Positions 2,782 to 21,884 of a DNA stretch of 34,325 nt are shown piece after piece (the first letter of the stretch is position 1; each line of letters starts with the position of its first letter). The stretch comes from Ministeria vibrans ATCC 50519 (Eukaryota > Protista > Filasterea): the NCBI GenBank assembly GCA_943704425.1, contig CALSCP010001964.1, forward strand, positions 1 through 34,325, in the 5' to 3' direction. The translations under genes were made by a program, and so were the position numbers. Under the pieces are notes generated by a model. The model did not search any database and was not told where the DNA came from. It worked only from the letters and a program-made list of their open reading frames with translations.

Positions 2782-3020
2782 CTCCTGTGCGTGTGACATG
2801 GCGTACTGATGGCGCACGGTGTGTGCAATGCGAGGCTCTCTTGTGACCACGAGAGGTCAGTCACGGTCCTTTGCTTACCGACAATGGGTGTCGGTGAGCC
2901 CACCAGGTGCAACCACCTGCGACTTGACCCTTACGTCACGACTGAGTCGGGCACAGGGGCGAGACGCGCCATGCTGAGACCGTGCTAACTGACGATGGGT
3001 TTGCGAGAGTGCCATCGCTT
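2782..3020 (+). ncRNA. Candidate structured non-coding RNA or structured 3' element, family unassigned
   Basis: At least six helices in ~240 nt between two convergent stop codons. Non-Watson-Crick positions are G-U on the + strand. No convincing ORF. Confidence 0.4.
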
Positions 3021-3142
3021 AAGCAGTAATGACGTCGAAGAAGAAAAGTAACAGAAGCGGAGACCGGTTCGATGATGGTTAGACAATTGGCATGGTACAA
3101 TATACAATAGTAGTAAGAGAGAGAGAGAAGGGGGGGGGGGGG

Positions 3143-3304
3143 CTTCATACGTTGAAGAGGGGTGCAAGGATGTGCTGGGCAAAGAGCTCAGAGTCAAGCA
3201 TGGAAACATGTGGGGGAGAGGTGCCTTCATACGTTGAAGAGGGGTGCAAGGATGGCAATTAGCTGCTGGGCAAAGAGCTCAGAGTCAAGCATGGAAACAT
3301 GTGG
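3143..3304. repeat. Direct duplication of the last ~80 nt of the FAM135-like CDS
   Basis: 3143-3213 matches 3225-3304 except for a 9-nt deletion (GCAATTAGC). Confidence 0.9.
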
Positions 3305-19529: not shown

Positions 19530-19960
19530 GGTTGGCTCCTCCTCCGCACTCTACGTCGAAAAACAGCCCTTTTCAGCACGAGAATCAAACGACCGTCGCA
19601 GCACTCTTAAGAATGGGACGGAATGCAAGGCATACAGAGACGCCCCTTACCTCAAGCAGCGGTTTCTCTTCGTCTCCGTAAGCCATAACTTTTGTTGTTG
19701 TGTTTTTTTTTCTTTTTCTTCTTCTTTTTTTTTTCGTGTTGGTACAGGCAACTCCAGTCAAGACTCAACACTTGCAGAAGTGTTTGTAGAGGAGGTGCAG
19801 AATCTGTGCTAGGAATTAGGGAAAGGATTAGATATTAGTGATAACAAATTACAAAATAATTAATACTAATAATTATTATTTTTAAATTTTTTGCAATCAA
19901 ACTAATCAGTAAAATATTTTCTTTCACTTCTCTCTCGTTCGTTACTGAATACTAACCATT

Positions 19961-21021
19961 ATGTCTGGACGTGGCAAAAAAACAGGCGGTTCAGGTCGCG
20001 GGAAGCAGTCGCGTTCGTCGCGCGCTGGTCTGCAAGTAAGTACATGAAACTGTCATTGTGACGAGAAACGAACGAAAATCGAACGGGGCGGAAGGCAGAA
20101 GGATGCGAGGCTATTACGAGCCGTAGTCCAGCAGTGGCCAGTGGGTGATAGTACTGAATACTGACATGAGCCGTGCCGCATTGGCTGTTTCCCCGAGAGG
20201 CGACAATCTCACGCAGTGTTGTCGTTTTACCGTAGTTCCCTGTTGGCCGTATCCACCGCCTCCTGCGCAAGGGACACTACGCACAGCGTATTGGTGCGGG
20301 TGCCCCCGTCTACCTGGCGGCCGTCATGGAGTACCTCGGTGCGGAAATCCTTGAGTTGGCCGGAAATGTCGCGCGCGACCACAAGAAGTTGCGTATCAAT
20401 CCTCGACACCTACAACTTGCCCTCCGCAACGACGAGGAGCTCAACAAGCTGTTGTCGGGAGTAATTGTTGCTCAAGGCGGGGTGATTCCCAATGTTCACC
20501 CTGTGTTGCGCCCACGACGTCGATCAAATGCCAAACCGAAGAGTTGGATTTTCGCCACACGACTGACGCATCGCGGAAAAGTGTTTGGCACGTATCAAAC
20601 TTGCCAGTACGCCCATGTTCCCAAGCTTACGGCTGCAATGCTCGAGCCATTTACCAGGTTCAAGACGTTTGACGATTTGATGGCGCTCAGCGACGACGAG
20701 CGTCAGTCACTGCTCACACGCTCCGTCACTGACTGCGTCTTAGAGCTGAACCCACGACGGAGAGTCTTCTATGTCGACTCGCAAGGTTGTGTTATTTGGT
20801 ATCTCAACGACGACGGGACTGTTGGAACGGCGCTCAATATTCCTGCGGAAGTGGTCGCGTCGTCGCTTGCGGAGTTCCTCGCACGCATGGATCTCGAGAA
20901 TCGTATTTGGCTCCACTCGAATAATTATGGCGATCACCTGCTCACCGACCACGCCAAAGAGTACCTCGCCTTGTTAGAGGAAAAGGCGCCTCATTTTTCC
21001 CATCTTAAGTCTCCTTTCTAA
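19961..21021 (+). CDS. H2A: Histone H2A fused to a ~160-aa C-terminal non-histone domain (286 aa; exons 19961-20035 and 20236-21021)
   Basis: MSGRGK...SRSSRAGLQ|[44 protein letters not shown]...[35 protein letters not shown] continues without a stop or intron into a further ~165 aa. Confidence 0.93.
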
Positions 21022-21884
21022 TCCGCCTGAGCGAATCCCCTGGGAATGCCAGAGCTCCACAAGGGAGTCCACGAAATAAAAAGATTGAACAGCCATAATA
21101 ATAATAATTATCAATCTTATTTTTATTATTGAACTCAGCTGGGAACTTCAACTCTCCCAAGTAGCTTCGTGTAAATTTGCCATTTCGGTATTCGTCACTC
21201 TTTGACCTGGGCGCGGACGACTGGGCAAGACCCTGGGTGTTCGCACTGAGAAATTTCATCGAAAAAACAAACTGATCGCGCGAGAAACTGTATAAAACAT
21301 CAAACCACCTTAAAGAAAGAGTCGAATGCGTCGAATCTCAGTCAAGTTCGAAATTTTTATTGCTAACATTTTTATTCAGAATCTACCTTCAAGCTAGATG
21401 CGCTCTATTGAGAATTTCATTGTCGTTGCCGCGCTCCTTCATCAAGCGAGCGCGCTCTTGACGGTATGAAAATTCATGCGAAAATATATGAGAATACAAC
21501 CCATATATGAAGTGTGGACGAAACCTCGACTTTTTTTTTATTTTCGCCTCTTCATCATAACTACCGCCCACCCCAATACTCGCAATAGTTTAAATAATTT
21601 GCACTACACACGCAACTGGCCCAGTTTGGTGCTTGTAGCGCTCGCGCTTTTTTTTTTAATCTTTTTTGTGGTCCGACAAAATTCCGACAAAATTTATTTT
21701 GGCCTCTCTTTCTCCCGCGATGCACGCTGATGACAATTGACAAACGCCCTACTAGAGTGAGTGAGTAACGAGACAGACTACTAGTATCATATCTGTCACG
21801 ACGGGGTTGTTTTTCTTCAAATTCTCTCGTCTATTCTCCTCGTGTGCTTTCTAAAGCTGAGTCGGCTCGTTCGGCCGTCATTTT

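Follow-up and report, generated by a model that had tools for sequence, protein, structure and literature searches.

A histone H2A gene of Ministeria vibrans fused in frame to a non-macro globular domain with relatives in giant viruses

The genome of Ministeria vibrans, a filasterean and close unicellular relative of animals, contains a gene in which a complete histone H2A is fused in frame to a globular domain that is not a macro domain. It lies on the forward strand of the window, as we call the whole stretch of DNA that was analysed (34,325 nucleotides of contig CALSCP010001964.1, strain ATCC 50519). The fusion is real in the genomic sequence, and we consider it probable that it encodes a lineage-specific H2A variant, composed of an H2A.X-type duplicate and the domain of a family without a name, that is placed in nucleosomes and likely provides a SUKH-type docking module there. 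Such a protein would join macroH2A as another kind of H2A that bears a globular appendage, and would carry a domain of an undescribed family.

The fusion gene comprises two exons, 19961-20035 and 20236-21021, and its spliced product, as read from the sequence, has 286 amino acids. Exon 1 (75 nt) opens with the ATG at 19961 and encodes 25 amino acids of the H2A N-terminal tail (MSGRGKK...SRAGLQ) before a GTAAGT donor. The following 200-nt, phase-0 spliceosomal intron (20036-20235, GTAAGT...CCGTAG) splits the H2A signature A-G-L-x-F-P-V, with AGLQ ending exon 1 and FPV opening exon 2. Exon 2 is a single open frame of 261 codons plus stop. It begins with the histone part (20236-20508, starting FPVGRIHR), which contains the histone fold, the acidic patch and the docking domain, and continues with a basic linker of 11 residues (20509-20541) that, judged from the translation against the H2A.X paralogue, replaces the usual H2A C-terminal tail. 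The globular C-terminal domain of 159 aa (20542-21018), delimited by AlphaFold2, its relatives and their alignment, begins at a Ser-Trp pair (20542-20547), the exact point at which stand-alone relatives start. A TAA stop codon occupies 21019-21021, and an AATAAA hexamer lies 54 nt past it (21075-21080). The original prediction had assigned H2A, linker and tail to one exon, which is true of exon 2, but the span from 19961 to 21021 also holds the intron, which it did not mention.

That the histone part is a complete H2A of canonical type with intact acidic patch and docking domain, as had been predicted, is borne out by Pfam matches of exon 2 to Histone (PF00125, E 1.1e-11) and Histone_H2A_C (PF16211, E 3.6e-13) and by the translation, in which the acidic-patch residues E-Y-L-G-A-E-I-L-E and D-E-E and the docking segment can be read directly. 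The histone fold is 86% identical to the H2A.X-type genes of the same genome, which end in SQEY, and all of its changes relative to these paralogues are conservative. Both paralogues (on G000:C2250 and C1671) possess the same 25-aa exon 1 ending in AGLQ, a GT donor and an exon 2 that runs from FPVGR, and the intron position is identical in the fusion gene and in the paralogues; their phase-0 introns measure 187 nt in L006 (G000:C2250:70629-73910) and 71 nt in L005 (G000:C1671:1-3199). Against either paralogue, dN is 0.058 and dS 0.95-1.14 (dN/dS about 0.05), the masked codons of 20419-20454 being left out of the comparison. The low dN combined with a dS near saturation (~1) shows the histone duplicate to be old and under strong constraint. 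We read the H2A part of the fusion gene as an old duplicate of an H2A.X-type gene, and the dN/dS ratio suggests that the predicted histone part is incorporated into nucleosomes with H2B. Its tail has changed: the LLPKKSKK...SQEY of the paralogue is replaced, both lysines of LLPKK have become arginines (LRPRRR, window 20506-20541) and SQEY is missing. The LLPKK motif is the PRC1 ubiquitylation site in animals. The genome also contains a further, divergent H2A-like gene (L010-L013; G000:C1833 ~2900-3300 and C846 ~600-1000; 56-61% identity) in which GLQFPV is uninterrupted and the intron sits elsewhere, after ...EYLAAEV; no Macro domain was found near this gene.

A chimeric join near 20520, named with the original prediction as something that would overturn it, is not borne out by the data. 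A metagenome contig from ENA that stems from a different assembly (L002, 1039 nt) extends uninterrupted over the intron end, all of exon 2 and the 3' UTR and differs from the window by two substitutions, at 20606 and 20886. This independent contig spans the join, which is therefore no chimera created in assembling this genome, and that candidate was ruled out. Values of GC3 are 0.61 in the domain, 0.66 in the histone part and 0.63 in an adjoining gene, and the genes flanking the fusion carry introns and are of host type; together with the shared intron, these observations also ruled out a recent viral insertion. There is no in-frame ATG from 20326, inside the histone fold, to the first conserved residue of the domain, and the complete domain is thus translatable only as part of the fusion. 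Four runs guessed to be RNA contained 0.63-0.68 of the words sampled from 19900-21250, compared to 0.95-0.96 in two other runs; the lower share fits, without proving, what spliced mRNA would give. In a search with Rfam, no histone 3' stem-loop was found within 480 nt of the stop of the fusion gene (21019-21500). On L006, the H2A.X paralogue matches the Histone3 stem-loop at 1359-1404 (RF00032, 21 bits, E 0.002, under the gathering score) and thereby unites an intron and such a match in one gene. The AATAAA hexamer and the missing stem-loop suggest that the fusion message is polyadenylated and replication-independent.

Neither exon 2 nor the tail matched Macro (PF01661) in Pfam, even at E<=10, structure searches returned no macro domain, and a macroH2A identity was dropped. 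The domain is modelled by AlphaFold2 with a mean pLDDT of 95.3 (94.5 in the core) and a pTM of 0.90. In the model, a beta-hairpin (residues 8-12 and 25-29) is followed by three short helices, a four-stranded meander (73-77, 82-85, 92-95 and 111-113), a long helix (116-133) and two terminal helices. The non-macro, folded globular tail of the original prediction is therefore upheld by the Pfam result, the model and the existence of stand-alone homologues, and its candidate class of H2A variants, in which H2A bears a folded domain other than a macro domain, is supported. Pfam gave no family for the domain; a ParBc_2 match (E 0.028, below the cut-off), absent among the top families of other members, was taken as chance. 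A sequence search of the PDB returned only rows at chance level and no relative, and neither Pfam nor the sequence and Foldseek searches of the PDB matched the domain to a known ligand-binding or enzyme family. The window copy keeps every residue conserved in its family (W9, T24, Y25, Y30, P34, S68, T70, C72, D86, Q88, C90, W93, E118, R122, E126, W130 and Y148, numbered from 20521), the first five of which belong to the N-terminal hairpin region. Across 121 family sequences D86 is invariant, and W9, Y25, P34, S68, T70, Q88, C90, W93, E118, F119, R122 and E126 are each found in at least 90%. Within this set, the polar cluster formed by S-x-T-x-C, D-x-Q-x-C and E-F-L-x-R-x-x-x-E is invariant or nearly so; the family has no conserved His or metal-type motif.

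By full-length similarity and by its motifs the domain can be assigned to a family without a name that is exemplified by the hypothetical protein AYV75500.1 of Terrestrivirus (UniProt A0A3G4ZKX7), its sole named member, which matches the window domain at E 1e-7 in phmmer and at E 1.7e-8 with 33% identity in Foldseek. An exhaustive phmmer search returned at least 122 cluster representatives at E<=1e-3, mostly stand-alone proteins of 140-190 aa, whose motifs W9, TY24-25, SPTxC, DxQxCxxW and SLPEFLxRxxxExxxW are all present in the window copy. The closest relatives, P0003 (46% identity, phmmer E 7e-39) and P0002 (44%), stand alone and have their Met exactly where the window domain begins, with an in-frame stop just upstream of the start in P0002. 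The P0002 gene starts ~50 nt past the stop of a coiled-coil gene on the same strand, behind an A-rich spacer, in a very compact, virus-like layout (L003 1-130). Further members occur in giant-virus MAGs (GVMAG contigs) of IMG/VR and on dense, intron-free contigs with genes for RING, Arf/Ras, eEF1A, RNase III, ERCC4 and resolvase proteins, which look like giant viruses; the family is also present in uncultured marine or soil eukaryotes, as small stand-alone proteins. The GC content of member contigs spans 0.20-0.69, and two JGI contigs (Ga0214473; L047 and L048) contain members at 66-67% GC beside Pro/Ala-rich repeat ORFs. A tblastn search of phages gave no match. No bacterial family member was identified, and no toxin domain was found among the genes called around members on five contigs (L016, L032, L033, L034 and L035); an adjacent polymorphic nuclease or deaminase toxin is a mark of the bacterial immunity role of SUKH proteins and not of their fold. 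Other fusion partners in the family are OPRTase-like Pribosyltran, ankyrin, MIP-T3_C and ALIX-like domains. The first of these is represented by P0004 (L033 4130-5164), whose copy of the domain is accompanied by a Pribosyltran domain resembling orotate phosphoribosyltransferase (E 1.7e-12); P0004 occurred on 7 contigs, among them L033, a dense giant-virus-like contig with RNase III, eEF1A and ERCC4 genes. In the 121 relatives, Histone was not among the 25 Pfam families listed of 90 matched, and no H2A motif was found at 36 family loci outside this species. Within this genome the family is single-copy, represented by the fusion gene itself, and the fusion with H2A was seen in one species only. 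The original prediction had missed this distinct family shared with giant viruses, as well as the invariant polar cluster, which is untypical of immunity proteins.

The same prediction had likened the tail to the SUKH/SMI1-KNR4 superfamily, an idea that is partly sustained by an aligning helix and by weak, converging matches, while the window copy itself matched no SUKH model in Pfam. Among the 121 relatives, twelve weak Pfam matches point to the superfamily, namely five to US22 (best E 4.3e-4), three to SUKH-4, two to SMI1_KNR4 and two to Syd, and these are four of the five Pfam families matched by most relatives. An hhalign comparison with an SMI1/KNR4 profile of 11 sequences, in which natural plasmid genes are combined with the SMI1_KNR4 protein of this genome, covered only 19 columns at the terminal strand and helix (E 0.028, probability 1.7%), pairing VA-x-S-L-x-E-F-L with iA-x-s-F-E-x-F. 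Language-model neighbours of two family members were SUKH-4 and SMI1_KNR4 clusters (scores 0.87-0.91). In the viral structure library BFVD, four betaherpesvirus proteins (GP26, T23, UL29 and UL28) were returned at E 1.3-2.4; UL28 and UL29, like UL23, belong to the US22 family, and the domain family resembles US22 in being common in large DNA viruses. A Foldseek search of the PDB gave nothing significant; the solved structures that come nearest to the domain are all five SUKH founding structures, Knr4 and FBXO3. The SUKH core consists of four helices and six strands, with a beta-hairpin and a four-stranded meander forming a split sheet whose cleft makes these domains protein-binding scaffolds (PMC3113570). 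The modelled domain has six strands. It resembles SUKH proteins in its alpha+beta composition, in helices near the N-terminus, in a beta-meander of four strands and in a long C-terminal helix with a-x-S-(L/F)-x-E-F-L, but its predicted hairpin comes ahead of the helices and not, as in the canonical SUKH fold, between them. We regard a binding module of SUKH type (Syd/US22/Knr4), though a very divergent one, as the most likely identity of the domain. The genome encodes one bona fide SMI1_KNR4 (SUKH-1) protein (L014 1201-1929, G000:C408:96111-96839; PF09346, E 2.8e-11). When the plasmid collection was searched with it by tblastn, bacterial SMI1/KNR4 genes came out as its best relatives (26-34% identity); a homologue search with its domain found nothing.

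The fusion might be genomic only, with alternative polyadenylation, a missed intron or a separate start leading the cell to make a normal H2A, the domain as a protein of its own, or both, as would suit a family whose other fetched members are stand-alone or have other partners. This is improbable given that the reading frame runs on from H2A into the domain without a stop and that neither an AATAAA nor a stop lies near residue 125-130. Moreover, the domain lacks an ATG for a full-length separate product and yet maintains its N-terminal conserved residues, the usual H2A tail (KK, SQEY) is replaced and not retained, and the join is conserved in the second, slightly different sequence of L002. 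Hardly credible is a decaying or neutral accident, i.e. a recent chimera, a pseudogene or an integrated piece of a giant virus without function. Knowledge of the fusion from a single species and the mostly viral or environmental nature of the domain family would agree with such an origin, but a dS of ~1 against a dN of 0.058 relative to the paralogues speaks for long-term purifying selection, and the retention of all family-conserved residues, the host-like GC3, a spliceosomal intron common to the host H2A.X genes and the adjoining intron-bearing host genes all argue in the same direction.

With regard to function, the domain might bind a small molecule such as a nucleotide or metabolite, or act as a catalytic module, which would make the fusion protein a functional analogue of macroH2A and a sensor or sink of metabolites on chromatin. 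What speaks for this is the near-invariance of S68, T70, C72, D86, Q88, C90, E118, R122 and E126 in 121 divergent members, unusual for SUKH immunity proteins, as well as the phosphoribosyltransferase-like partner of P0004. Conversely, no known ligand-binding or enzyme family was matched, a conserved His or metal-type motif is missing, the ankyrin, MIP-T3_C and ALIX-like partners are not metabolic, and every one of the nearest structures is a SUKH module that binds protein, making this reading rather unlikely, if worth keeping in mind. A chromatin-borne role in defence or counter-defence would be another option, in which a SUKH-type immunity or anti-effector module, exchanged with giant viruses, sits on H2A, so that each nucleosome with this histone would present a decoy or inhibitor to nucleases, deaminases or chromatin-degrading effectors of viral or toxin origin. 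The distribution in giant viruses makes an immunity function attractive; we accord this option only a small probability. If it were true, the stand-alone viral relatives would, following Rosetta-stone logic, act on host nucleosomes.

For the lineage-specific, nucleosome-placed H2A variant that we favour, the origin by duplication and fusion is largely shown: an old H2A.X-type duplicate shed its C-terminal end and was joined in frame with a family gene of ~150 residues. The histone part would then pair with H2B and be built into nucleosomes as other H2As are, given that strong purifying selection has kept its fold, acidic patch and docking domain intact. In nucleosomes, the C-terminus of H2A emerges close to where DNA enters and exits, so that the basic linker of 11 residues would keep the domain next to linker DNA in a macroH2A-like geometry. 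There, the domain might offer a protein partner or a small ligand a permanent place to dock on chromatin; as SUKH domains are protein-binding scaffolds, docking is its most likely role. Against it count the position of the predicted hairpin, the occurrence of the fusion in one species only, and the invariant polar cluster, which is better matched to a fixed ligand-binding or catalytic site than to the variable protein-binding surface of an immunity protein. Expression would be independent of replication, in line with the missing stem-loop and the AATAAA hexamer.

The fusion gives a first functional handle on a domain family with a wide distribution among giant viruses and uncultured eukaryotes, for which it predicts a function at or on chromatin. 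Since the protein is small and should be readily expressed, its partners, ligands and genomic distribution are directly testable. A second, unrelated case besides macroH2A would show that the attachment of a module to the H2A C-terminus arose more than once.

MacroH2A is the textbook core histone with a folded accessory domain, and the fusion protein resembles it in combining a full H2A fold, a basic linker and an autonomous globular domain at the H2A C-terminus. The fusion gene, judged from its 3' end, also appears to be of the replication-independent, variant type, like macroH2A. However, the appended domain is a macro domain in macroH2A and a non-macro domain here, the linker has 11 residues compared to roughly 40 in macroH2A, and the histone part, at 86% identity to the canonical/H2A.X type, is much closer to that type than the histone part of macroH2A is. 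No macroH2A was detected in this genome, in which Macro-domain matches (counts are lower bounds) lie on contigs other than those of all H2A matches. A full-text literature search found no description of such an H2A fusion. Terrestrivirus AYV75500.1 and its environmental relatives belong to the same domain family and share SPTxC, D-x-Q-x-C-V-x-W and SLPEFLxRIxxEN with the fusion protein, but these uncharacterised proteins are stand-alone or have other N-terminal extensions, and no histone fold was seen in them among the Pfam families listed or at the family loci fetched. Lineage-specific H2A variants with a longer extension in place of the C-terminal tail also exist in bdelloid rotifers (H2Abd types). 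Their extensions are short and not known as folded domains, whereas the H2A of M. vibrans ends in a domain of 159 aa that AlphaFold2 predicts to be folded and that has stand-alone homologues.
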